Source: Bugula neritina (Eukaryota > Animalia > Bryozoa). From it: a stretch of DNA of 64,000 nucleotides. Each line of letters opens with the position of its first letter. Within the stretch, counting starts at the first letter, position 1. Where the stretch lies: positions 13,587,675 through 13,651,674 of the forward strand of contig OZ037768.1 of the NCBI GenBank assembly GCA_964035545.1, given 5' to 3'. Shown in pieces: positions 5,156 to 62,434 of the stretch. The notes below the pieces were generated by a model. It was not told the origin of the DNA. It made no database searches and was given only the letters and a program-made list of their open reading frames with translations. Position numbers and translations under genes: made by a program.

Positions 5156-8100
5156 ATGGATGAAGTAGATGCAAAACAGCCAATGGTCAGCCTCCTTGAT
5201 GTATTTGTGATTGGAGGGGCCGTGGGATTTTGCATTTACTGGTTTTTTATTCGAACAAAAAAGAAACAAGAGTTTACAGAAATAAAACGCCTTGCACCTA
5301 TGTAAGTAGCACATCTTCATACGTTTTAGTTATACTTTTATACCAATTGTAGCATTGATATATTTCTTGCAAATCACCATTGTCCTATGGCCTATGCAGT
5401 CTTATTCTAGTATGATACTTTATTAAACAAAACTAATTAGATCGTTGAAAAGATTAAAACTGTGCTCATAAATGAAGGATAAAGTTTCTGGAATCATTCA
5501 CTTCATATTCCTGGTTATGTTAGATAGACTGCATTTATGTAGTCATATGGTGAGCTTAATAATTATTCGGTAAATTCATGGAATCTTTTTGTTGTGTCTG
5601 GCTTTTCTTGATAACTTGTACTTCTTTGCTTTTAAACAACACCAGGCCATAATAATAAGCACAGGTCAACATTTGTATTTGCTGTATCTCATGCTTTTTA
5701 TTCTTGTGTCTAAACCAACTTAGCAAATTTATGAATCTATTATTTACAGTGCCACAAAAGACATTGAAAGTACTCATAGCAAAAATTTCAACTTTGTGAT
5801 TTCTGAAAGATAATCAATTTGCATCATTTTATACCCACTTGTTAAGTTATTACTCTGCTTCATCTTTCTTCTCTATGGATGCCATAGTACTATATAGTAT
5901 ATACTGAATGCTGGTAGCTTTCTTATTATCTTACAGGACTGTTCAAAGAACTCAATCATATGATCCTTCGTTTATTGGCAAGATGAAGAAAACAGTGAGT
6001 TAATCCAACTTAAACTTTTTCAGTCTGTGACAACTTATGAAATAGGTACATAGTTTGGTGCCTGCTGGAATTATTGCATCATTACATGTCATAATTGGCT
6101 TATTTTGTAATATTTTTTATTAGAAATAGTAACACCAGCTGTTGATATAGTCCAACTGATAGTGTTGATATGACTAACAATAGTTTGCTTGGGTTTACCC
6201 AGCACGTGCATCAGCTGCATGAATGCGGTGGAGCTGCATCAAATAGACTTGCGTCATAGTTACTAACTATTAATCTGTAGGTGACTCTTGCATTATTACC
6301 ACATATCATCTTCTGCAATCTACAAGCATCAAAATTACATTACTCTGTGATAATCATATCCTTCTATAGACATAGTCACGTTTAACTCTTGTATTTAGGC
6401 TGATAACATTTATTTATATTGTAATGCTGATGAAAGTTGATAGTCAACATTTGTTGTACCATTTTATTAATTATTTATATGGAACTGACAAGTTGCATTC
6501 ATATAGTATATGGGGGATGTGGTCACTATAACTCAAATACATCTTTTGAGTTGTAAACCAAATTGAATTTTATCTTCAATTGTCACTATGTGGAGAAGGC
6601 AGTTAATAACTATGTAAGCTCCAGGAATATAGCTTTGTGTCTTTAGGCTTTTATTGTTAAGTCTCTTTCTGGTGTTTTTATTAAATGTTAGGTTATTGTA
6701 CAAAAATGACTAATTGTTGTTAGCTATTGGTGGCTTGTTGGTAATCAATCATAATAGCTATTGTAATAATTTTAATTACTAAATTAGATAATTAACTAAC
6801 AATTATTGTAATATAAATATTTATATTAATATTGGTCAGTTTGAAGTTTTGAAATTTAGCATGTTTTATACGGAGTATGTGTTATGATATCCTACGCAAG
6901 TTCTGGCTTCAAACAAAATAGAAGAGTTTTGTAAATTACAAGTCGAAAGTTCTACAATTTTGAGACGTAATTCAGGATCAGCTAAAGGTGTGACAAGTTC
7001 AGTGGCTGTCCCCACAGTGGCTGTCCCCACAGTGGCTGTCCCCACAGTGGCTGTCCCCACAGTGGCTGTCCCCACAATGGCTGTCCCTATGCATTAGATA
7101 TTGTCTGCAGTTGTTATAACCAGCTGCACCTTCTGCCACAACCAATAAGTTAAGGAGAAGTCCTAAAGTGTATGGGAGGTACCCAACAATATAATAGTTA
7201 TGGTTATACCAGTGTCACATAGACTAGGCAGTCTTATATCTAATCTCTGTCTTCCTGACTTGCAGGGAAGGAATGTGGTTATATTCTACGGCTCCCAGAC
7301 TGGCACAGCTGAAGAGTTTGCTGGTCGGCTGGCTAAAGATTGCAATAGATATGGTATGAAGGGAATGGCTGCAGATCCAGAAGAGTTTGACATGGTATGT
7401 CTAACAATAGCAGCCCTTTGATATACTTAAGTAGTCAATTCACTGTATTCAATACTCTTATTACTAGATTACCTTTTCAGTTGTGTCACTTTAGTATATG
7501 ACCTGCATGATGCGGTCAGTGAAATCTAATTAAGTATGCTGTCCAGGCTTGTGGAAATCAATGCAAAGGTTTTGTTCATAGTATGTTGCTAACCACACAG
7601 TGTAAGTATCTCTTGTACAACCCATGCTGCTTTCTGGGAAACTCGGTTCCAACTACCGCACTACAGCACAAGGAATTGCTGATGGTGAACTCGCCATTTG
7701 AAATGTGAAAATAGTACCGATCTGGCAAATTTTAGTTTTGGCTGTTGATTTTCATGAGTTGGCATGCAGGTTTAGCATATCACTGGGATCTATAATTTAT
7801 TAACTCACTGGAAGCTATTCAAAACAGCCTATTTTAGTTGAGTTATTTTAGTTACAGACACATGTTACAACATTCAGACGTGGTAACTAAAGTCTGTAGC
7901 AGACATATATATGCTAACTGTTCCAGTCTAGTACACTAGTACAAAACTGATGAAATATTCAAGGGCCAACTTTTTATCAATAAATGTGATGGATTTGCTG
8001 TAGCTTAACACCTAGTAGAGTATGACATGCGTTATCTAACCAGCTCATAGTTTATCTCACTGTTAGTATAGTTAAGGAGTTCTGCATTCACAATTCGCCA

Positions 8101-11100
8101 CTTACCAGGATGTTTGGACTTTGACATTTCTGAGATTTCACTTGCCTACCACAGCTTCAGCGGGTCCTGTTATGTACATGTGTGTTGTATGATGTGCAGG
8201 ATGATTTACCTCAGCTGAAAGACATAGAGAACAGTCTGGTTATATTTGTAATGGCTACATATGGTGAGGGTGACCCTACTGATAATGCACATGAGCTGCA
8301 TGAATGGTTACAGAATGACCAGGATTTGGAGGGTGTCACGTATGCAGTACGTCTAATAACTTGTTATTTCTATTTCCTCTTTTATATCTCTTCTGTTATA
8401 CTTGACTTCTATGTGACCCAAAGCTCACAAATCTATATTTTATAAGTCAAGTTAAGTCTATTTCTAGAATACTCTTCTGTGTGCTCCAAATTTAAGTTGT
8501 ATGAAATCATGTAAGGGCCAATACAATATACATGCATACAGCTCTAAAGTATATGGAGAGCATTAGTTCTTGGTGCCAAGTTTTATATGATCATGTGTGG
8601 TGTGTATTGAAGGTATTTGGGTTGGGAAACAAGACATATGAACATTATAATGCCATGGCAATATTTGTTGATGAAAGGATGAAGAAGTTGAATGCTACCA
8701 GAGTGCATGAAGTGGGTCTTGGAGATGATGATGCCAAGTAAGTTAACTTGTACATGCAAATGTATATAGTTGTATGTGTATATAGTTGTATGTGTATATA
8801 GTTGTATGTGTATATAGTTGTGTGTGTAAATAGTTGTGTGTGTATATAGTTGTGTGTGTAAATAGTTGTGTATGTGTATAGTTGTGTGTGTATATAGTTG
8901 TATATGTATATAGTTGTGTGTGTATATAGTTGTGTGTGTATATAGTTGTATGTGTATATAGTTGCATGTGTATATAGTTGTGTATGTATGTAGTTGTATG
9001 TGTAAATAGTTGTATATGTAAATAGTTGTATGTGTATATAGTTGTGTGTGTATATAGTTGTGTGTGTATATAGTTGTGTGTGTGTATAGTTGTGTATGTA
9101 TATAGTTGTGTGTGTGTATAGTTGTGTGTGTATATAGTTGTGTGTGTATAGTTGTGTGTGTATAGTTGTATGTGTATATAGTTGTATGTGTATATAGTTG
9201 TATGTGTATATAGTTGTAGATATATATATGTATGTAGTTTTAGATGTATATAGTTGGATGTGTATGTGTATATACCGTAGTAGTATGTGTATATAGTAGT
9301 AGATGTGTATAGTTGTGTGTGTATACAGCTGTATGTAATTGTAACTAAAGGTTGTCATTGATAAATAGAAGGTCATGATCTAGGACATACAATACCATCT
9401 ACCCATCACCTTATTGGTAACAAGTTAGTTGGTATAGTTTAGCTGACCAGACACTGCTTAGTAACCTGTGATAGTTATTTATTTGGTGTCAATTTGATGA
9501 GTTAGGACCAATAAATAATTCCAAATCAACACACTAATTATTGGCTATTTATACCATTGACTTCATAACTGCCAACTTCAATGACTAGATTTTGGAACAA
9601 GGTATTGGCAGTACAACATATAAACTCCCTTGTGTTTTTGCAAACGAAGTTTGTCTCTTGAGGTAAGCAGCCCTCAGGAAATTAATATAGATTTCATGTA
9701 AATCAGTGTTGCCGTAGTTTAGATAGGTAAGTATGTCTGCAACATCCTGTCAGTTAGTCTGCACATGCTCAGTGAGGCTTATAACCAAAAATAGCAAGTT
9801 ATGCAGTTCAATAATTGGTAAAATTGTTGTTTACTATTTTGAGAATTTACAAAGTTCTGCTTCACTTAATATTTGCTTATACTCTACTTGTTAACTTGGA
9901 CAACTTCACGCTGTGCTCTGTGAATCACTTTGCAAGGTCGCTGTGTGTATTCCAGTTAATGCAACATTTCAGTTGCCCAGGCATGCACAGCATATATTAT
10001 ATTGATATAACTTGCATGTATTGTGATGTAATTTCAGTATTGAAGATGATTTTGTTACTTGGAGAGAAGGGTTTTGGCCAGCTGTTTGTGAGAAGTTTGG
10101 TATAGAGGCCACTGGAGAGGATATTAGCATGAGGCAGTATACACTGACTGTGCACGACGATGAAATTTCTAAAGAAAAAACATTCCGTGGAGAACCAGCC
10201 CGTCTCAATTCTTTCAACACCCAGAAACCGTAATTATTACTCTCTACCTGGTGGCATTAGTGTTACTTGAATTCTTCAGTGTGATAATTAGATTTTACAC
10301 AAACTTTCTGTTGCAGGCCGTTTGACGCCAAGAACCCATTTATGGCGCCGGTGATAGTGAATAGAGAACTGACTAAGGGCGGGGACCGGTCTGTCATGCA
10401 CATTGAGCTGGACATCACCGGTTCCAAGATTCGTTACGAGGCCGGGGATCACGTGGCCATATATCCTATCAATGACTCTGAGCTGGTCGAGGGAATCGGC
10501 AAACGTCTCGGAGTGGATCTAGATGTTGTGTTCTCTCTCAACAACATTGATGGTTAGTAGAAAGGTTGTGATATACTGAGATACTTAGCTTACACAAATA
10601 CTCAACAGATTAAATACACATCCGTTTGTACTACTAAAACTATTATCTTAAATAAAAAAGGCATTTTTTACAAGTTGATCTACTGTTTGTAATGAAATAT
10701 CCTTTGCAAAATAGCTATAGTATAGCATTTATTTATAAGGTCTTTATGCAGTCCATTTATTGATTAGATGTTACATGAGTAAATTGTGTTGGTGTCATCC
10801 ATTAAAATCTGGTCATTTTGGTTCAACTGTGTTGCGTAACTTATTATCTTTGGAGAAGTTTATAGCTGGTCATTCATTTTGCTATTATTACAGTGTGTGG
10901 CTACTTGACCTTTACAAACAGTGTTAATATATTTAACTATTACATTATAGAGGAAGCCAGTAAGAAACATCCTTTTCCTAACCCGTGTTCCTACAGAACT
11001 GCACTCACTCATTACTTGGACATCACTAGTAGGCCCCGAACTCACATCCTCAAGGATTTGGCTGAGTATTGTACTGATACTGCTGACAAGGAGAAGCTTT

Positions 11101-13268
11101 TGGCCATGGCATCATCTACTGATGAGGGGAAGGTAGGCAGTTCACTGAGTATAGTAGTATGACTATCAGTTCACTGAGTATAGTAGTATGACTATCAGTT
11201 CACTGAGTGTAGTAGTATGACTATCAGTTCACTGAGTGTAGTAGTATGACTATCAGTTCACTGAGTGTAGTAGTATGACTATCAGTTCACTAAGTGTACT
11301 AAACATGCAACACAGACCAGAATCAACAGTGAGATATTGTCAACTTGTAGAGACTGTATAACGAGTATGTGTGGAAAGACCACAGGCATATTCTAGCTGT
11401 TCTAGAAGGCATTCCTAGTCTCAATCCACCAATAGACCACTTATGCGAATTGTTACCTAGACTCAACGTTAGATATTACTCTATTTCATCATCTCCGAAG
11501 GTATGTATATTCTATTATGCTGACCCTATGATACTCATACAATATGAATTACTATGCTTAGATAAAAAAATTGGGCTACAAGGTAAAACTATATTTTGCT
11601 TCATCACTTATACTTCAATGGTAACAAGTAAAAAGACATAGGCCTATAATTAACTTAGATTATTATACTTCAAATTACATGGAAAGTAGGCATGCTAAGA
11701 ATTATAAAGTTGCAGAATAATGCTAGTCCATATGCCCAGCCATTGTATCAAACTGGCTCCAGCACCAATTTGTAGTGTGAAATTTGCCTCATGACATTAC
11801 CAATGGCCTTATCAGGATTTGAACCCATAACATAGTGCTTACTCTATCCACTATACCATAACTACCCTCTTATATATAAAGCATATTTGCGAAATAAAAA
11901 ATTGCTTCCTTGGTGTCTTATTTTTTCTTAATGCATTGTTAATATTTTTAGGAGCATCCTACATCAATTCATGTCACTGCAGTGCTGGTGGAGTATGAAA
12001 CTAGGATAGGTGTTAAAATGAATGGAGTAGCTACCAGATACCTGTCCAACAAGTTACCTACAGACTCTCTAAAGCCCACTGTACCCATATATGTTAGTAT
12101 TGCCTGTGTCTTCAGCATCAACAGCAGCTGGGTTAATTGTTTTATCTCTTTTGGATGCTGTTTCAATAAATTGCTATGATTTTTTACATTCCAGGTGAGG
12201 AAATCACAATTTAGACTACCCTTCCGTTCCACCACCCCAGTAATTATGGTGGGTCCAGGCACAGGCCTTGCACCATTTAGAGGTTTTATTCAAAGTCGAG
12301 ACAATGAGCGAAAGCAGGGTAAGTTGTTGAATGATTTACCTCTGACAGCTGGTGTAGTAGATCACTATTCAGCATACATGATGTTTTTCTACCAGTTTTT
12401 ATGATCTTTCAATATGCACACTAAAATTATTTTTACTGCAGGAAAGAAAGTAGGACAAATGATTCTCTACTTTGGCTGCAGATACAAGGACCGTGATTTC
12501 ATTTATCAAGACGAGGTGAGACTTTTTAAGTCCATTCTATAACAAATTGTTAACTGGGCAAATTTTTAGCTACTTTCAAGTAATTTGTATGCTGCAAAAT
12601 AGTCATGCAGAGTATACGTTGCCTTTCCTCAATTATGAGTCTGGAACTTATGAACTGTACAAAGCCAAGAGCTATATATTACAATCATTTTAGATTGAAC
12701 AATTTGAATCAGAGGGAACATTATCCAAGGTGCATACAGCTTTCTCTCGAGATGGGCCCCAGAAGGTATATGTACAGCATCTGATGCAAAATAATAAGGA
12801 AGAGATATGGCAAGTTTTAGAAGAAGGTGGCCACATTTACGTGTGTGGGTAAGTAGTGAACCAGTCTGTTGTATATGTACTCTCCGCAACTTTTCATAAC
12901 ACATCATTTAGGAAACGAGCATTACACAAAGCAATGAGAATAATCCATATGAAAAGGTAAAAATATGAGCATTTTGTATAACAATATGTAGATATAGGAA
13001 CAATTTTGCATTTCTAGCCTGCTTACTAGTAGAATGTTTTACTAGGTCGTGTGATGAGAAATGTAAGTTTTTCTTTTGCTGCTGCCATTACTTGGTAATA
13101 TTTCTTTCTTATTTTGTTTGTAGAGATGCAAGGAATATGGCAAGAGATGTACATAAATGTTTGTTAGATGTAATTACTAGTCTAGGAGATAAGAGTACAA
13201 ATGAAGCTGAAGATTATATCAAGAAGCTGCAACAGAAAGGCAGATATGCTCAAGATGTTTGGAGTTGA
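5156..13268 (+). CDS. POR: NADPH-cytochrome P450 reductase, 15 coding exons (5156-5301, 5937-5994, 7266-7394, 8200-8346, 8613-8737, 10038-10229, 10317-10552, 10951-11132, 11351-11500, 11952-12092, 12195-12318, 12442-12515, 12694-12848, 13124-13268 are the 14 I delimited; the count should be read as 14-15)
   Basis: N-terminal membrane anchor ([19 protein letters not shown]). FMN domain motifs [26 protein letters not shown] and [16 protein letters not shown] motif [13 protein letters not shown] motif [16 protein letters not shown]-terminus [13 protein letters not shown] junctions keep frame. Confidence 0.97.
7000..7087. repeat. 15-bp tandem repeat (CAGTGGCTGTCCCCA), about 6 copies
   Basis: Directly visible; explains the spurious GTATV ORF. 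Confidence 0.95.
8760..9335. repeat. 16-18-bp minisatellite (TATATAGTTGTRTGTG), more than 30 copies, in a POR intron
   Basis: Directly visible; degenerates towards the right end. Confidence 0.95.
11138..11297. repeat. 29-bp tandem repeat (CAGTTCACTGAGTRTAGTAGTATGACTAT), about 5.5 copies
   Basis: Directly visible; fills most of a 218-bp POR intron. Confidence 0.95.
11785..11868 (-). mobile_element. Decayed copy of the same SINE family, in a POR intron
   Basis: gacattaccaatggcctt..ggatttgaacccataac..ctctatccactataccataactaccc aligns by eye with aacatcaccaatagcctt..gggttcgaacccatgac..ctctaacccccagaccacggctgctccc at 55742-55830. Confidence 0.6.
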
Positions 13269-22700: not shown

Positions 22701-25700
22701 ACCACATTATTATTTGATAAGCTTGCTAGAAACCTAGCTTACACCAACTACTGTACATACACAACATGCCAACACAGTCCGGGGCAATTGCTTTTTCAAA
22801 TATTTATATACTCTTTTTAACTAAAAGCAGCAAGATTTAAAACTATGACCTCACTTTTATAAAAAAATAAATAAGTATTGATATAAAGAGTTTTAAGTGA
22901 AGATTCCAACAGTTATCAACAGCTAAATCAAGCTATATATTATAACATGTTTAATAAAATATCAATGACTATACGATTTTAAAATAAAACCTTGGCGCTA
23001 TCAGGATGTGTGTGTAGTTCAGATATTTTATAAGGAAATTAGAAACACACCGTATTCTCATAGTCATCTAACACAGCTTCAGTCTTTAACCTCCATAATG
23101 TTAGAAATCGTTTCTTTAGTTTCTCATCGTGGTGAAGGGTGGCCTACAGTGATGGAGTTTTATTTCAAGTATGAACATTTTGAAAAGCTGTATAACACAG
23201 CTTACAAATAAACCAATGCACATATGTACTAAAATATCTTTGTGTTTTCTTTAAAAACTAAATAAATGTGCATTTGGACAACTTACCACACGATTTAGTG
23301 TCCTTATTTCCATGCTATGATCATACTGATTCTGCCAGAAATAAAAATATTTTGCTTCCATGTTTTGTCTATAAACATTAAATAAAAAAGTGAAAAAATA
23401 ACTCTAACTTCATATCAAAATTAGTAGCCCTAATATTTAACTACTACAAAATAAAATCAAAGAGCATTCTCGGCAGAGAATATTCTTCAATTTTAAAATA
23501 CTTGTTTAAATCGGCTACTCTTGTTCTCAGTAAATAAAATGGTACGAGATTAGCAAATAATGTAGCTAAATGCTTTAATGAGTCCAATTGCCTTACTTTT
23601 CTATTTCATACATATGAGCAACATTTAGGGCATATTTCATACATATGAGCAACATTTAGAGCATATTTTGAACTTGAAATGTTAGCGACATCTTCGGTTT
23701 CATATGCTAAATGTTTAAACGAAAGAGTAAATGTATTATAACTATATTTAAAATAAATAATATACTTCAAACAGAAAATGTGGACATTATAGAAAGAATA
23801 TAAAACTTCAGTATCATATCTAGCATATCTCAGAGATATACAAATTCACACATACTTGAAAAGAGAAGTAGCTTGCTGATAGGCTGAATGTTTCCATCTC
23901 CTATGCTCTACAAACTCACACCACTGAATAAAGTAGCTTTGAAGAACAGTAAATGAGTAATGAACTTCACATCTATCAGCCACCATCTTCTTCTCCCGGC
24001 GTAAACACACATATTCTTTCCACCGATCTATCGCGGAGGATGCAAGAGATGACCTGAAGTATGAGGTTTGTGTACTGAATGTATGTAATCTACGGCTTAT
24101 AAAAAATATATACTTTGTCAACAGACTTCTGGCATTAAAATATAATTTCTCAAATCTACTGCAGAATGTGCTGGAGCCTTCACTGTGCCAGCTTAGTAAA
24201 TAGTTTTATTATATGATAATGCAGTAACGTGATAAACTCTCTTTTATTGTCTCCACTTGACAAATTTTGTTAGCAATATTTTTGATATAGACACAATGAC
24301 TTATACACACCTAAAACTGATTATTAGAGATTATTAGAGTGACTTCTACCAACATATCTCAAACAAGTAGCACAAGCACTATACTTAGCAATAGACATAG
24401 TATAACATACTGATAGTGATCATATGCCTGCTGGGTTAAATGGGATATTCTCAGCTCTTCACACTCATTATAATGTTCTGCCCATCTCCTCCAAACTCTT
24501 CTCGTCAGATTATGATTATAAAACTGCTGAGCTTGAGAAGTATTCAGCTCCTTCAGCCTTCGTTGCAGCGCACAGAAACGTAGAGCATTGAAACAGTTCG
24601 ACTGTAAAAATAATTAGATTTCCATTATCATAATAGCAACATTATGCTTTCTTTTTTAATGCCGGCATATTTATAAATTAAAACGGAACCTAAAGCAAAT
24701 CATATCTCAAAATTCATGTGAACATGATAGCATCTTGGACAGTATAAAATCAGCCCGCTACGTAGACTATGTAGAGCTGAGAGCTGCATGCACAGCTTAC
24801 CACTACTCTGTTGTTAGAATGCTGTACAGCTATTTCTTCCTGCTGATGCTTTTGGTGATGCAATACTATATCTGAATATAACGGTAAGGAAATAACTCCA
24901 GATTCATATTTCAAGCTTTTAGTGTTGAGAAACACTAACAGCTTGGGAAGATAACTTCAAACACAACAAGGAATATTGCAATGAAACAAAGGCGACTTAA
25001 TGTTCAACAGTGCATAGCATATTAATTGAGAATTGTTAGCAATGTTTTCAAAGTAAGTATGACTTTTTCCAGTGTAGTTTTAGTTCTTTTACTATCAAGT
25101 TGCAAGGCAGACCATGAGCATGGGGAAACAAGGTAACTATCCCATATATGACAACTTGGTGAATAAGTATAGAATATATAATGAATACAGAATGTATATA
25201 ATGTGGGAAATGCATTATGGCACTTTTGTGACTGAACCTAGAGAGTGGGGGTAATAAAATGTGCAACCTCCTCTAACCAATCTGGCAGACACAGGCTTGG
25301 TCTAAGCTCTAAACATAGAGCTTCCACCCAACATAAATGCCAAAAAAAGTTTTCAAGACTTTACCAGATTATTTATAATTATGGCTATCCACTTTTGCCA
25401 ATGAGTTCTAAAAATAAAAAACATCAAATGCTAAAAAATACTCAACTTGCTTGATATTTACTTTTTTACAGTGTCATTAGCTAGATATATTTTATACTAA
25501 ACGACATAAAACTTGAGAAATTGTTATATTGTCAATATATTATTGTCAATTGTCAATATCATGTTAAAGCAAACAGCAATTTGAGACTAGACCAATTTTC
25601 CCGTCTAATGACCAACTTCAGATCCAATAACTCGGCCAAATACCATATTTTATAATAACCAACCAAATTGTTATGTATTCAACTATTTATAGTTTATACT

Positions 25701-28700
25701 ATAGTTTAGTCTGTAAATAATGTTAACTGCATAAATTTCATACATTTTGACTGACTAAAACCCAAAGCCACAGAATATAAGTGAAATTACAGAAACCACT
25801 CAATACATATGGACACGACGAGAGTGTCAAGATGGCATGTTCACAATAGAATGACAATCCCAGTAGGCAGCATGAGAGCTGACTGTATGGGTGGCAGCGT
25901 AAAAGTCCTTGAAATATCTATAATACAGACAGGAAGTGTTTGTCATATAAACAGAAGTAAACAGTACATCCAGCAGCTGAAGAGTCAGGTTGAAACATGC
26001 TCCACCAACAAACAGTGTGAAGAAGTAAGATATGGGTCATTAAAACAAATAAGTGCACTGATATATATTATATAGTTGAATAAAGGAATCTCCAGTAATT
26101 TTATAAAACTGCAGTCACAACTTTGAATTTGCAGAGAAATTATAACATAAAATGTCAATACGCCAACTAGCATGGTTCACAAAGCATTGATTTTGTTATT
26201 TTTAGGTGGAATGGAAAGCTGGTGAGCTGAATACATCTGACTGCTTCCAGATAGCAAAAATACATGATTACCGATACTTCTGTCACTTCTATTTAAGACA
26301 ATATTGGAGTCAGTGTGAGGAATTCTTTCGATTAGGTACGGTGTACCGCCACATTCTAAATAATTGGTAACCATAGTTTAATAAATTAAATCACAATGAT
26401 TAATCTTTCTGAAGAAATATTATCCCTAAAATTGTTTAACCTTAGAATCAACAAGGACTGACGAAGTGAGTGCCCTCGATGTTGAAATACAATGTCAAGG
26501 AATTGGAGAAGTAGATATAAAATACAGTTTGCTAACACTATATGAGAAGCAGCCTATAAATATAGGTAGGCAAACACAAGAAGTTACTATAATCTAAGAT
26601 TAGTCCATTTGGAGCAACAATATCTAAAAAGTTACAAATTTATCCCTTAGTATGTCAACTATCTAATTGTACAGTCTTTTGTAGGTCACCTAATAACAGA
26701 ATGCCAGTCACTGCAAGTCAACAAATATCTGCATATCGTAGGATTTGTGGAGGCAGCCGAGAAATGCCCTGCAGATAAAACCTCAGACTTCTACCCCTAC
26801 ACCCACCCCTTAGTTGAGACACTACAGCAGTATGCCAACAAAGGCAGGTCTCTCGTTGAATTTGATGTCTACCAGCACAACCTTTCAGTAGGTTTACATA
26901 AATATTTTATCTGTTCAGTCTAAATCTATTTTGAAACAATCTTTTTTAAGTTATTGTATTAAAAATTATTTCATTACTAATGTTTGTTTCAAACCTATTC
27001 TATACATTTTATATAAATAGTTTTTATATATAAGAAGTTAGAAAATCAATTATTAGTTTCGTTATCTTGCTACTTTTGAAGTTGAGACTAATCTGTGGAA
27101 ACGTGATCTTCCCAGTAGTGTATGATGAGCTGTTGACCTTGTCAAGGTCACATGGCTGGATATATTATAAATGTGGAGCAGTAAAAGACAAGGTGGATTT
27201 GTGGGACTGGAGTAATTTATGGAACAGAATGAACAGGTTTGAAGCCACCCACTAAAGTTATAAAGTCAGACCGTAGTTCATAGCCTAATAGTTGAGGTGT
27301 ATGACCAATATAAGTAGAAGAGAATTTGTTTTAGTGCCACACTGGCACAGCCATTACAATATAGATTCTCCAAAACAAAGAATTTAGTTACCCGATAATA
27401 GCTTATCAACAACAATTTCCGATAACACATGAGCTCTATAATTTTATAATTTTTCATGCCGCTTATAATTTGAAAAATGAAACTATTTTAGCTTAAATTT
27501 CTCACGAGAAAACATGTTGTAAAATTATCCACTGGTAAACCTAAATAAGTTAGATCAAATGACTTAGTTCTAATAAAAATAACCAATTTGACAAAATAAT
27601 GTGCCCATAAAGTGTTAATTCAAAAGGCATATACATTATATATGCATGTGTGTATGTGTATATATACAACCATAAACTTCAGGTTCAACTTTGAAAGGAA
27701 AGAAGGTGTGACAGTAGCTTTACACAGTCACTGCAGTTGGACCCACAAGCTCGTGGTCCTAATGTTGTTACTACTTCTTATAATGGCTGTGATGATGGAG
27801 ATCTTCACTATTTATAGAAGGGATGAGATTGTCAACTTTTTCAGTATGTAAATAAACAGGTTAAAAGAAATTATGGATTTTAAATGAAAGTATTTTCCAT
27901 CTGATGTATAAAATGCCATCAAGTTACATCCAAAATTTGGATTAACATAATCCAAACTCATTTCAACATCTTCCACATTCTAGCTCAATGAAAGCTCAAA
28001 CACCCTAAGTTGAAAAATATAAACCACTGAAAGATCTACTGTCAAACTTCTTGTTTTCTAGGAGAACAGAGACGGCAGCATAATAGAAATGTGCAGGTGA
28101 GGGCAACTCCAGTAACAGTAATGACTGACGTAGAGGGTAGTGTCAGTAACAGCACACAGTGGATGGTGGAAGGGATCGGCAGTGAAGGGGCTACGGGTGA
28201 TTCCAATAGATTAAACCTTAAAGCAAAAGAGGCTGTACCAACAAATGCTTAGTGCCAAAGAACTTTAGCTACAATCACTATAAGGATACAGTGTTTCCAG
28301 ATGGCAAAATATCTGCGAGATATACTCTGCTCAGCCATCAACTGTATAGTTTCTTCTTTCAGTTGGACCTCTTGTTTTACCAACAGTCTTCTACGCCATA
28401 ACCTCAAATATCGGAGCAGCATGTTGTGATGATGAATCTTCACAGCAGTGTCTACATCATTGAAACAGAAACTCCTTATACTATAACATATACACTGAAA
28501 CAATATTATTAGATGACTAAAAATAATATTATCATAAAATCAACTAAATGAATTAAAGTTGGCTATTAAATATCTCAAGAATTCTATCATAAAATAAAGT
28601 AATTAACACAACCTACCAGACTTCAAATGGCTAAACTTTCTCAGTTCTACAAAACATGACCATGCAGCCCAAGCCTTGGCTAACAACGTGGAGTTGTGGT

Positions 28701-33289: not shown

Positions 33290-33965
33290 AAATTAATACT
33301 AGTACTTTACTAATACTAGTACTCTGTACTATTAGTATGACAGTATCACTATCAATACTATTACTATTAGACTATAACTATTACAGTATTAGTATTACAG
33401 TATGAGTATTAGTATTAGTGTTACTGTTAGTATTACTGTCACTAGGAGTAGGACATCGCTATCTCTATGATTATCAGTATGAGTATGGCTATCACTATGA
33501 CTATGAGTATTAGTAATACTAATACTATTAGTACTAGTAATACTAATAGTAATAGTAATAGTAGTACTAATAGTAATGCTGTAAGTGTAATACAAGTTAC
33601 AACTAGTACTACTACTAGTAAAGTACTAGTGTTGCTATTAGTATTACTATTAGTATTAGTATTACTATTAGTATTAGCATCAGGCTCAGCATTAGATTAG
33701 TGTTACATCTATCAAGTTTGATACTCATAGTTATACTTATAGTTATACCAAAGCTAATACTAATAGTAATACTAATAGTAATAGTATTAATAATAGTAAA
33801 TGTAATACCAATACACTCACAGACAATATTATTATTAATACTAATACTAATAGTAATACTAATACTAATACTAATACTAATAGTAATAGTAATACTAATA
33901 GTAATACTAATAGTGATGAACTTAAAATTAAAATACAAAATTAACTTCAAGTTCAAGTACAAATG
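33290..33965. repeat. Degenerate hexamer-periodic (TAGTAA/TACTAA) tract in the presumed first intron of SFI1
   Basis: Produces the ITISITIS/ILIVILIV pseudo-ORFs on both strands. Confidence 0.85.
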
Positions 33966-33989
33966 TTATTATTAACATAAACAAAAAGA

Positions 33990-37018: not shown

Positions 37019-37075
37019 TTGGCACATGGAGGGGCATTGTTCACACTTCACACGCAGCATAAACGTATTGTAAAC

Positions 37076-46340
<9,265 letters not shown>

Positions 46341-46621: not shown

Positions 46622-49600
46622 CTAAGTTTTATATAATTGAGAAAGCTCATTGACAAGTTTAGTAAGGTGTGGGTTGCCTCCTAGACTAGATATCTCAGCA
46701 TGTAATCTGAAAATAAAGCACAAATTGTAGCTTTAACTTTTCAAAGACAATTACAAGTTTCCCTATCTCTGTGATAAATCTTAGTATTTTAGGGCACTTC
46801 TAGATTCTCTCCGGAAAGCAGTTTCTTCATACATACAGCAGGCCAATTAACGGTCATGAATTCGTTTGGTAAATGATTAAAGAAAATCTTTAGGATGAGC
46901 GACGCTTAACGACTCAGTTGTTGAGCAGCGATTGCTCAAATCAATGACAATTCACTTTTACATTACAATGCTAAAACTTTTTAGTACATCTAATCAAAGC
47001 CTTTCCTGCAGGATTCATGAAAACATATTGATATAAACTAAATAACCCGATAAAATTAAATTTAAGAGTTACTATAACTTGCGATTAAAAAAAGAAAAGG
47101 CATACAACTCTCGTAAACTTTTAAATGAATTTATTTACGAGAGAACCTAAAAGTATTTTTAGAGTTGCTGTAGTAACTCACTTTTTAGCAACATATTTGT
47201 ATACTTACTGTGATTCGAGTTCTAACAGAACTTTCTTGGTATACTCAAAAGCACCGAGCTTCATCATGTGCTGAACGCAGTACTTTTTGACATCAGCATC
47301 TTTGGTTCGTTGGCGCACAATATCTACATACACATGGAACACTTTCTGATAATCAAGCTTGTAATGATAATGCACACTTATAAGAAACAATGTTAGTGAA
47401 AGAAAAACTAATAAACAAACATTTTTATCCAACTATGCAGAGTTTGCAAGAAATAATAACTCACTCATGATTTGATGGTCGTTTGGATGAGAGTTGATTG
47501 CATATATTATTGGAAACGAAAACTTTCCTTCTGTTAGATCTTCGCAATAACTTTTATTCTGCTCATACTAAAAGTAACAGTACGTGCAATGTCAAACAGC
47601 AAGCTGATCAAATAGCAGTTTACATTATATACAACACCATTGAGATACAATACATATTTATACATTTTAAGCAAGCTTTTCTGGTTGTTCATATAAATCA
47701 AAAGAACACCTCATAACTAATTATGCTTTGGAATTTGCAGAGCATATTAAAACAACAAATATCAAATTGCTTTTAATTTTTTTTACATGGTTGGACAAAA
47801 ATATCAAACCAATATACTACATCGAAGTGACATATATGTAGAAAGAATATTGCACTTGATAGAAAACTAACATTACATTGATGAAAGCTGTATCAGCTGA
47901 TCTATTGTGGTTCATATGTTCAACAGAAGATATGCACTTATAAAATGAACCTTATTCCACAAAATTATATATCAATTGAAAAGCTTTTACACATGTAAAT
48001 GGTGAAACACATACCTCAGTTGAGCAGAGGTTGGCATAGTCATCCCTGATTTGGAAGTAAAGTCCCAAGTACTCAGTGACCCGACTTAAATCGCTACAAG
48101 ATATACAACAGTGTCAGTGAAGTAAACAAGACATTACATCAACTTTAAAATTCTCTTAAAAGACCAAACCTGTAAGTACATTCATCTTGTGATCATCAAA
48201 ACAACGTCACAATGTCTGTATTTGCTACAATAACTTACATTTGACTTTCACTGAACAGCTGCATCAATCGAATTGCCAATCCAAACAACCCTCCAGTCTC
48301 TGAAAAAAACAATGATTTAAAAACATACATAAACAATATTTATTTTCAATTTATATGTCGTGAGGGAACTTTTTTTCAAGATTTGGTGCTTCAACAGCAA
48401 GAATAGCAAACGACAGTAACAGAAGACAACTACAAAACAACTGCAGCACTGCCTTGATACATTAAAAATGTTTATTGGCAAATCTAAGTATAAATATTTC
48501 TCTTTAGTTGATGAAAGACATACTTCTTTTAACCATTAACTTGTATTGTTCCTCAGAAGGGCAGATATACGAGTCTCTCCAGTATATATCCATTCCCTGA
48601 CCCTTATGTAACTCCAGCAATTGCTCGGTAAACACCTGCATTGAGTAAAAACATTCATCTTAAAATGTAGTTGTCACAAAACACTACATGCGTGATGAAC
48701 ATCAGCAGCACACCAACTCTACTGATGAAGTACCCAACAACCTACAACTTTGCGGTCAAACAGCTTTAAATACACAAACTTAGTTCAACCATGTATTTCA
48801 AATATAAAGAATCTTCACATAAAAAAGCAAAATGTTAACAAAAAAGCACACCTCGGCACATCCAGGTTTCCCTAAGGCCAACAATTTTTGTAGCCCTAAG
48901 AAGTAGACATAATTAGCAGAGTTTAGAGTAGTAGGTGTACCATATATATGATGAGCTACAGGCACCCCTCTTCTTAGAGTAGAACTATCTTCAATGTCAT
49001 CAATTCTATAAAAGCAAACGACAAAATAATCTTTTAAATAAAAAGTGGCCATAATGAGATTCTGAAATATTATTGAATGTGACAAAGTCAAATTGGCAAA
49101 AAGCTAATTGCATTGTAATACAAAATACAAACGACTACCTTTTCATTACAATAAATTGATAGCTATAGTTTGCAGACGCAACAATTGAACAAAGTCCCAA
49201 AATGAGTATATATATTATATAAAACTACGTGCTATCTGCATTGTTTACAAGTTTCAACAACAAAGCTGCATACATTACATAACAAAATAACTACAAGATA
49301 ATGCTTGCCAGCTTTACTACCACTTCATTACTACAGCATAAATGGCAACACAATGTTTAATTGTTGTTGTCACATATAACAAAAATACACAAGAATATGT
49401 GATATGAACTGTGTAGTTAGCAATACTCATACACACAAGCCACACACACACACAAGCTTAATCAATGCAGCCTTAAGACCATTAAAAAGTATGCACTAGT
49501 TTGCAGGGTGCTTCAAGATGATGCTGCATAATTTAAAAACATTCACTTATGACTGCCAATAGCAATAAGTGTCATGAAGGCTGTGTAATGTATTTTTTAT

Positions 49601-54417: not shown

Positions 54418-56961
54418 ATGGAAGATGACATTACTTTGGCGGACTTACCATGGGAGGATGTCATTTTCAAACATATATTTCCTAGCCTCGACCTCAAAGC
54501 TCTTTTTAACATAGGTAGTACAGCTTTGACATACCGGGAGATGACCAAAGAATATTTCAAAATGAACAAAACCATTAATATTGGGAAGCACGGTGCAAAG
54601 GTCACAGAAAAAGCACTGAGTTTCTTATTGAAAGAAAATAAATGTTGTCAAAAACTTATACTTAAAAATTGCAAATCGTCACTCAATTGTAAAATCCTAG
54701 AACCAATGCTAGAAAGAAACAGACAGTTAGTTCACTTGGATCTTACTCAGTGTACCAGTTTGACAAATAACAGTCTGCAAACTCTTGCAGTCAACTGTAG
54801 GAAGATACGTCACCTAATACTCCGAGACTGCGTCTGGGCATCATCTCCTGCTGTTACTAATATTGGTTTGCAGTGTCGAGAACTAATATACTTGGATTTG
54901 TCAGGGTGTTGGAATATCAATGATGAAGCAGTCTCTGTCATTAGCCAGGCTTGTAACGGGTGAGAATAGTTTAATTAGTTTATTATAAAAAATAATATAT
55001 GATGTCAAGGCAAAATATAAATTGTTAGGTTAATTGCCGTTGACAACTAGCAAGTTGATAATCCAGTTATGCTGATCTTGTTGATTTTTTTATTTAGCAT
55101 TTATTGTGTTAATAGTACAAGACTTTGAGCTGTGAAAATTTTCAAGTTGTAAACATGTTTCATAAAATTGTAAAAGATGGCTCTTACGTATTCGTCGGAG
55201 AGTTACAGAAAATGGAATGTTGAATTTATTAATTTGCAATTGTTTGTAATCTTGAACAATCTAAAAATGATTTGGCATATTAAAAAACTAAACTGTGTAT
55301 CAATTTAAATACATATTTAATATATACTGTATTTTCTATTTCTAAAAAGTTTATTTTTATGCCCCTAGGTTGGTGGATTTAAATATCTCTAGAATATACG
55401 GTATTACAGATAGCAGTGTTAAGTCTGTTGCAAGAAACTGTAGAAATTTAACGAAATTAAATGTAAGAGAGTGTTGGAGACTCAGTGATAACAGTATGAA
55501 AATGTTGTTGGAATATTGCAAAAGTTTGAAGGTTAGTAGTAAATACAAGCAGGTTTTCTTTTGTCTTCACAAAATCTGTAGTGTAAATGTTTTTTATTTT
55601 ATATATGAAAACTTGAAACTCTCACACAAGTTTATAGTCGCTACCCCTGTGAGACGCCCCTGATGGAAAGGGTTTTGTTAAAGCGGGCCAAAAACTTATT
55701 TAAATGAGGCACAGGAGCAATTATGACTGGATGCTCTTCCTAACATCACCAATAGCCTTTGTCTGGGTTCGAACCCATGACCTTGTGTTTACTAGGCAAA
55801 CGCTCTAACCCCCAGACCACGGCTGCTCCCATATAAAAACTTGAAACTGTTTTTTCTTAAATTATATTTTTGCTCAAATAACTACTATGTATGATTATTG
55901 CTACTAGCACTTTGGACTGTGCTGTAATTCATTTTTAAGACACATTGCAATTGTTAATCCACAGAACTATCTGTAGGGTTCTAACTTAGTGTCTACAATA
56001 CTATACGTCGATAATTATCAATAACTTTTAACTAATCCACATATATACTTTGTTTTCAGATGATTAATGTAAAATGCACTGTTTCAATGTAGTTATTTTG
56101 CATTTGATCATTTTGTTACTCTGCTCTGAATTATTGGAGAAGTTGTAAATCAAGTAACAATTTTCTGACTTCTTCCATATACTCTAATCATACTGTTTTA
56201 CAAATATTGTTGTATATACAATATTATTCAGAGTCAAAGCTGTTTTATACGATTTGTTTTGGAAGTAATGGTGTCAAATAGTTTTAGTAACTGTAAATGG
56301 TATTAGGCTGGCACATTGGCTGCTTTAGATGAAACTTGAGAGTAGGCTTTTGTCGAAATGAGTCCTCAAAATTTTTGCACAACCGAGTTATTTTAATATA
56401 GAAATAATATGAACAAAAAAAAAATAAGTTCTGTTAAATAACAATGATTTTTGATGAATTGTACTTTTAATAGTTAATATACATATTAGTTGAGCTAAAA
56501 TGGTAAACGATGTATCTATACTTGAAATCCCCATATTCCTGTTTCATCACCTTGGTATTTTAGAATAGTTTACATATATTGTCCTGTGCTACAAATGGAC
56601 TAGTACTTCATTTGATGAAATGGTTTCAGCAGTCTAATTTCTTCTATTTTGATGATTAGATTGCACTTCGAGAATATTAATTCTTTGGTTTGAATTTTGC
56701 TTATAAAAATTTTCTAAATTTATTTGGATATTGCACCCATTAAACTTGAAATTTTTTTGCAATCAATTGTTCTTCGGTCTATTTGTTACATTATAAAATA
56801 ATTATTGCTTTCTGTATTTTTAGCTATTACAAATAAAAGGATGTAAATCCATAACATGGAGGGTTTTTACAGAGTTTAGAAACAGAGGAGTTATACTGGA
56901 TCAAAGCACAGACTTCTCACGACTTCAGGTGGTTCGGCCTGAACCACCAATACAAATCTAG
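54418..56961 (+). CDS. FBXL15: F-box/LRR protein 15; exons 54418-54959, 55369-55531, 56824-56961
   Basis: The F-box start LADLPWEDVIFKHIFP matches the LDLPWEDV signature of FBXL15. Cys-containing LRRs follow (LDLTQCTSLTN, LDLSGCWNIND, LNVRECWRLSD), and the protein ends PPIQI*. Confidence 0.88.
55621..55830 (-). mobile_element. tRNA-derived SINE with an 18-bp target-site duplication, in FBXL15 intron 2
   Basis: The minus strand starts GGGAGCAGCCGTGGTCTGGGGGTTAGAGCG (A box) and has GGTTCGAACCC (B box). It is flanked by atatgaaaacttgaaact (55603-55620) and atataaaaacttgaaact (55831-55848). Confidence 0.88.

Positions 56962-57570: not shown

Positions 57571-62434
<4,864 letters not shown>

Follow-up and report, generated by a model that had tools for sequence, protein, structure and literature searches.

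Does the U12-type intron of an SFI1-like gene in the bryozoan Bugula neritina enclose a complete gene on its opposite strand and, if so, what kind of protein does that gene encode? The question arises from a 64,000-nucleotide (nt) stretch of the B. neritina genome (GenBank assembly GCA_964035545.1, contig OZ037768.1, forward-strand positions 13,587,675 to 13,651,674; hereafter the window, whose coordinates are used throughout), in which an initial annotation had proposed an eight-exon membrane-protein gene nested antisense to SFI1. It is virtually certain that the nested gene is real: it is an independent, single-copy, protein-coding gene, observed together with its nesting, and its full transcript is predicted. 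The overall best explanation, considered probable, is a nested gene of a probably bryozoan family that encodes a type I membrane protein, namely a receptor or accessory subunit carrying a histidine cluster.

The plus-strand coding sequence (CDS) at 25059-28252 consists of eight exons that splice to 1,266 nt and stay open throughout (421 amino acids plus stop), all seven introns being of the GT-AG type; re-reading the translation reproduced the proposed model with every exon in place. Evidence on individual exons came in part from run X1, which is probably RNA from a sister lineage (its status is guessed) and supplies contigs that carry neither strand nor expression level and possibly include DNA. 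Exon 1 (25059-25132) contains the ATG, the predicted signal peptide (approximately residues 1-17) and a conserved x-HEHGE[ST]R; exon 2 (25793-26024; 232 nt) holds a histidine-rich part, an RWH motif, four cysteines, and a conserved N-glycosylation sequon at N78; exon 3 (26206-26335) has three cysteines, a tryptophan, a histidine, and YL-QY that are all invariant; and exon 4 (26446-26565; 120 nt) contributes one conserved cysteine. The donor of exon 5 (26685-26887) and the acceptor of exon 6 (27082-27236) are spliced in X1, and both exons show 100% amino acid identity with the sister lineage, in exon 5 despite four base changes. Exon 7 (27683-27843) encodes the predicted transmembrane (TM) helix (approximately 27750-27806), and exon 8 (28062-28252), the least-supported exon, encodes the cytoplasmic tail and stop; each is covered by an X1 contig and is free of insertions and deletions (indels). 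Eight exons are ordinary for this species, since the paper on assembly tzBugNeri2.1 gives a mean of 8.23 exons per transcript (PMC11480708). Genome searches with exons 2, 3, 5, 6, and 7, as well as with two profiles, returned only the gene's own locus; five candidate paralogues (L002 and L026-L029) were dismissed as noise. A perfect donor-like GTAAGT at 25054-25059 (+) overlaps the start codon, but it probably does not serve in splicing, because the sister lineage reads GCAAGT there.

The host intron was delineated by an RNA joint and by its splice signals as a 3,418-nt GT-AG intron at 24872-28289 on the minus strand, enclosing the CDS as initially proposed. Its 5′ splice site GTATCCTT (28282-28289, -) fits the RTATCCTT consensus and is spliced in X1, and a branch-site-like TTCCTTACC (24883-24891, -) lies near the terminal AG; with this CCTTAAC-like element by the acceptor and no pyrimidine tract, the intron is classed by its splice signals as U12-type. 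The nested CDS occupies 93% of it, and the nested stop codon lies 37 nt short of the U12 donor, the distance first reported. The five further host introns observed in RNA are 143-487 nt long. Both flanking host exons are delimited by X1 joints on the minus strand: the exon after the U12 intron (24801-24871), which has homologues in contigs L013, L017, and L022, and the exon before it (28290-28451), which the nested 3′ untranslated region (UTR) probably overlaps. Joined according to RNA, the host exons give a 317-residue open frame with a tryptophan spacing of 33 (33, 33, 63+3, 33, 9+24, 33), consistent with the 33-residue repeats ending in L/F-x2-W-K/R that define SFI1. Nine single-exon host open reading frames (ORFs), all short, gave no Pfam match, and the host is therefore named SFI1-like from its tryptophan repeats, without a database match. 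In the sister lineage, a stretch of about 25 nt containing the U12 branch site is missing from contig L018 (approximately 7670-7700, corresponding to window positions 24876-24900), which is probably an assembly slip and possibly a real allele; L019 and L020 retain the branch site in a degenerate form, TTTCCTTAG.

The nested frame bears a clear signature of purifying selection. None of the six exonic substitutions listed from X1 changes an amino acid (p about 5e-4), and the eight indels listed from X1 in the region all fall in introns or past the stop, with none in nested exons. When exons 1-6 were compared with sister-lineage DNA (L018 and L019), 19 synonymous and 6 replacement changes and no indels were found, giving a ratio of nonsynonymous to synonymous substitution rates (dN/dS) of 0.075 (Fisher p 1.6e-9). 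The signal peptide accounts for four of these replacements, and dN/dS for exons 2-6 is 0.027. Introns 1-5 diverge from the sister lineage by 8.5-13%, versus 0.6-6.8% for the nested exons. The host exons have a dN/dS of 0.38 in the same comparison; the nested protein is under tighter constraint than the host SFI1-like protein.

More distant relatives extend this picture. An exon-2 search of 1.84 billion representatives returned five real matches (contigs L013-L021), and a metagenome scan added contigs L022-L025; the homologues represent five distant lineages that are 39-54% identical to the B. neritina window and 39-68% identical among themselves. Two further weak, single exon-2 matches, P0006 (fish) and P0007 (phage tail), were taken as chance. 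The distant contigs are probable bryozoans, and the family, as judged from these matches, has so far been seen only in such contigs, in agreement with the narrow distribution initially suggested. The distant contigs stop before exons 5-8 and the U12 donor, and the comparison thus covers exons 1-4 and the acceptor side. The end of exon 1, HEHGE[ST]R, is followed by a phase-2 donor in all four distant lineages that cover it, and, counting distant and sister lineages together, this motif and donor recur in five, each with an in-frame methionine and a hydrophobic leader. Exon 2 is 232 nt long in three distant lineages, exon 3 is 124 nt long versus 130 nt in the window with identical phase, and exon 4 in L013 has the same 120 nt as in the window and is 44-47% identical. 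Wherever testable in exons 1-4, splice sites and phases match, which, along with the low dN/dS of exons 1-6, upholds the original argument that the exon chain did not arise by chance.

Three of the distant lineages have enough flanking sequence to examine the nesting itself (L015 and L016 are too short). Opposite-strand SFI1 exons lie upstream of the nested homologue in L013/L014, L017, and L022-L025, the longer ones being 40-73% identical, and a U12-like branch site precedes the acceptor in each lineage (TTCCTTAAC in L013, TGCCTTAAC in L017, and ATCCTTCAC in L022). The nesting is thus kept in all three, and its conservation across distant species can be stated with very high confidence. No convincing promoter words shared between the SFI1 acceptor and the nested ATG were found.

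X1 joins the host exons at 24871/28290 with a depth of 48, and adjacent host introns are removed likewise. Among the seven nested junctions checked against RNA, 26887/27082 (GT..AG, plus strand) is spliced at a depth of 8, and the other six are unspliced in X1. The remaining X1 contigs within the U12 intron are unspliced at a depth of 4-8, with two extending 30 nt into flanking host exons; depth over the host U2 introns is about 0-3. This pattern fits a retained U12 intron together with some nested mRNA. Downstream of the nested stop, the first plus-strand poly(A) hexamers occur at 28552-28593, past the adjoining host exon, with no AATAAA or ATTAAA before 28552. Because the stop codon is so close to the donor and the first hexamers lie so far beyond it, the nested 3′ UTR probably runs across the U12 donor and into the SFI1 exon upstream of it.

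Such an overlap raises the alternative, compatible with the best explanation, that the nested transcript regulates SFI1, with its antisense 3′ UTR masking the U12 donor, or with colliding polymerases, so as to tune minor-intron retention. The 37-nt gap between stop and donor, the lack of an earlier hexamer, the higher X1 depth across the U12 intron than over the U2 introns, and the conserved nesting are all in keeping with this mechanism. However, minor-intron retention is common anyway, the 3′ end is a predicted one, the distant contigs stop before the donor side, and nested pairs often persist with no functional link, as for 2mit and timeless2 (PMC3786989). Regulation of SFI1 by the nested gene is accordingly regarded as unlikely, although it is among the two alternatives that survive best.

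The predicted protein starts with a signal peptide some 17 residues long and ends in a tail of roughly 70; its ectodomain contains 13 cysteines and four sequons. The signal peptide can be read as a hydrophobic leader in six lineages, and Kyte-Doolittle hydropathy gives a single TM stretch that peaks at residues 328-346 and is followed by RR. These features agree with the type I topology originally proposed, and a type I single-pass membrane protein is predicted with strong confidence. Eight cysteines in exons 2-4 are invariant, and the N78 sequon is present in five of six lineages. Six histidines fall within the first 25 residues of the mature chain; His 19, 21, 27, 30, 40, and 122 are invariant wherever covered, and His 42 and 76 are found in five of six lineages.

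The family and fold of the protein were sought exon by exon, with short queries and low-confidence models that cannot show a fold to be new. Nothing above the cut-off was found in Pfam with any of the eight exons or the homologue alignment, exon 2 and its profile had no match in a PDB sequence search, and exons 2 and 5 had no usable match in the ESM Atlas. AlphaFold modeled exon 2 as two strands and a long helix of 23 residues (predicted local distance difference test score [pLDDT] 67.5) and exon 5 as a 67-residue model (pLDDT 61.3). Searches with these two models by Foldseek, VIA-align, and Atlas shape search turned up nothing above background, the best Z scores being 4.3 and 4.6; a shape match to ApbE/Ftp was set aside as a generic hairpin plus helix. 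No internal duplication of the ectodomain was detected by hhalign (under 1%). The initial statement that the protein belongs to no named family is therefore sustained at the level of these exon-wise searches. Of the functional labels that accompanied it, 'receptor' remains a putative term drawn from topology only, and 'lectin' is unsupported, as discussed below.

Under the best explanation, the nested gene would be transcribed from the plus strand within the SFI1 U12-type intron and spliced at ordinary GT-AG sites. The product would enter the secretory pathway, shed a signal peptide of 17-25 residues, become glycosylated and disulfide bonded in its ectodomain, and be anchored as a type I membrane protein, all as predicted from sequence. 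It may then act as a cell-surface or endomembrane receptor, or as an accessory subunit with a fixed partner, whose conserved N-terminal histidine cluster binds a divalent metal (for example, Zn or Cu) or senses pH. A metal- or pH-sensing receptor role is a tentative proposal, possible but somewhat doubtful. A bolder version is improbable: a membrane receptor family unique to bryozoans, able to sense metal or pH and with an undescribed ectodomain fold, would be kept inside the SFI1 minor intron because its 3′ UTR covers the U12 donor and controls SFI1 splicing; if true, signaling at the surface would be coupled to the assembly of centrioles or cilia.

Several observations weigh against the best explanation. 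Histidine clusters can be structural or incidental, and the predicted TM stretch contains a glutamate (E344). Exons 7 and 8, which encode the TM helix and tail, are backed by a single sister contig and stand on weaker evidence than the rest of the chain. No distant homologue was found for exons 5-8: a word-index search yielded no candidates for exons 5 and 7, and exact look-ups found no contigs carrying exons 6-8. Splicing at one of seven nested junctions comes from a single run with strandless contigs and a guessed RNA status. Finally, in the single-exon searches no family or structure match backs any biochemical role.

An alternative of the same low probability as SFI1 regulation is that the protein is an endosomal or lysosomal accessory glycoprotein like OSTM1, in which a helical, disulfide-bonded luminal domain shields or regulates a transporter and the histidine cluster reads luminal pH. 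Helical, cysteine-linked segments in exons 2, 3, and 5 are consistent with this idea, strong constraint suits an obligate partner, and an OSTM1-CLCN7 entry ranks seventh for the exon-5 model. However, that match (Z 4.0, 7% identity) is at background level, and its range, 184-278, leaves the matched subunit ambiguous. Moreover, neither the exons nor the homologue alignment match OSTM1 in Pfam, the ectodomain has only four sequons, and inspection of the tail by eye showed no clear sorting motif of the tyrosine or dileucine type.

Less probable is a very divergent SUEL (rhamnose-binding lectin) module in the ectodomain, with the protein working like the co-receptor EVA-1/EVA1C. The latter is a SUEL-domain type I co-receptor whose overall size and topology resemble those of the nested protein, and the cysteine spacing of residues 56-128 recalls the SUEL pattern. 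In contrast to EVA-1/EVA1C, the nested protein gave no SUEL signal in exon-wise tests, which cover part of a domain that would span exons 2 and 3. The SUEL profile PF02140 found six other loci in the genome and missed this one, hhalign to the genome's own SUEL exon gave 0.1%, and Pfam was blank for each exon and for the homologue alignment, with no lectin match; the exon-2 model has a 23-residue helix and had no SUEL match in fold searches. Genuine SUEL lectin exons, used here as the comparison, occur elsewhere in the genome at C4:10591870-10592931 and C3:21465120-21469100 (L007-L010).

Slightly less favored still is a gamete-recognition or allorecognition surface protein, coexpressed with the centriole gene in cells that form sperm or bear cilia. 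Type I topology, a helical cysteine-rich domain, and a narrow distribution are typical of such proteins, but they are usually fast-evolving or polymorphic, and here the ectodomain dN/dS is 0.027 and the gene is single copy. Because of this low dN/dS and single copy, roles in immunity, allorecognition, and gamete recognition are all disfavored. A pseudogene, or an exon chain read by chance, is scarcely credible, and is refuted for exons 1-6, by the dN/dS, the indel distribution, the conserved splice sites, and the RNA joint, even though six junctions are unspliced in X1 and no annotated full-length protein appears among the matches.

With the type I membrane protein as the preferred reading, the arrangement can be set beside known nested genes. 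The NF1 intron genes EVI2A and EVI2B encode type I membrane glycoproteins; together with OMG, they have few exons and fill a small share of the very long NF1 intron, unlike the B. neritina gene. No sequence relation of the nested protein to OMG, EVI2A, or EVI2B was found. The likeness lies in opposite-strand coding genes within a single intron of a large conserved gene (PMC4394429). Nested genes make up about 10% of Drosophila and about 1% of human genes, two-thirds of them antisense and most functionally unrelated to their hosts (PMC4394429), so that the arrangement, initially called unusual, is ordinary as far as antisense nesting goes. What is distinctive here is the U12-type host intron, the eight-exon CDS filling 93% of it, and, as far as the searches reach, a protein with no known family. 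A close parallel is 2mit in intron 11 of Drosophila timeless2, which likewise lies antisense within its host intron and encodes a transmembrane, receptor-like protein; its nesting is conserved in its clade, and no functional host link is shown (PMC3786989). In contrast, 2mit encodes a leucine-rich-repeat protein of known fold, and a description of its host intron as U12-type was not seen in that source (PMC3786989). Human SFI1 also has a U12 intron, one of the minor introns of cilia-related genes that are retained when DDX59 is lost; the passage concerned makes no mention of a nested gene, and the likeness is one of U12-intron presence (PMC12095793). A narrow search of titles, abstracts, and one review turned up no published case of a protein-coding gene lying inside a U12 intron, which leaves rarity unproven. 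The interest of the locus therefore lies in a new protein family and a stable arrangement, not in nesting per se. The predicted membrane protein is encoded by one gene copy, is well supported and strongly constrained, and matches no known family; coming from a phylum that has been little studied, it makes a target for structure prediction and for bryozoan-specific biology. The locus is also a compact natural experiment on whether the splicing of a minor intron changes when an antisense gene fills it.

Elsewhere in the window, exons of an NADPH-cytochrome P450 reductase (7200-12262, +; read by eye from ORFs) are convergent with the SFI1-like gene, facing its 3′ end, and a U12-donor-like ATATCCTT occurs at 10697 (+) in the region of the reductase gene. 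A glycoside hydrolase family 1 gene (lactase/myrosinase-like; 37019-45740, +) was recognized by eye from its exons, with the U12-like donor word ATATCCTT at 41441; another such word, GTATCCTC, is located at 45897 (-). Further ORF pieces, also assigned by eye, resemble geranylgeranyl diphosphate synthase (47205-49091, -), FBXL15 (54418-55663, +), and the kinase ZAK/MAP3K20 (57571-62434, -). Low-complexity tandem tracts that yield spurious ORFs are present at 8645-9376 (TACAC/TATA-type), 33300-33975 (TAG/TAT-type), and 39500-39960 (about 450 nt of CA).

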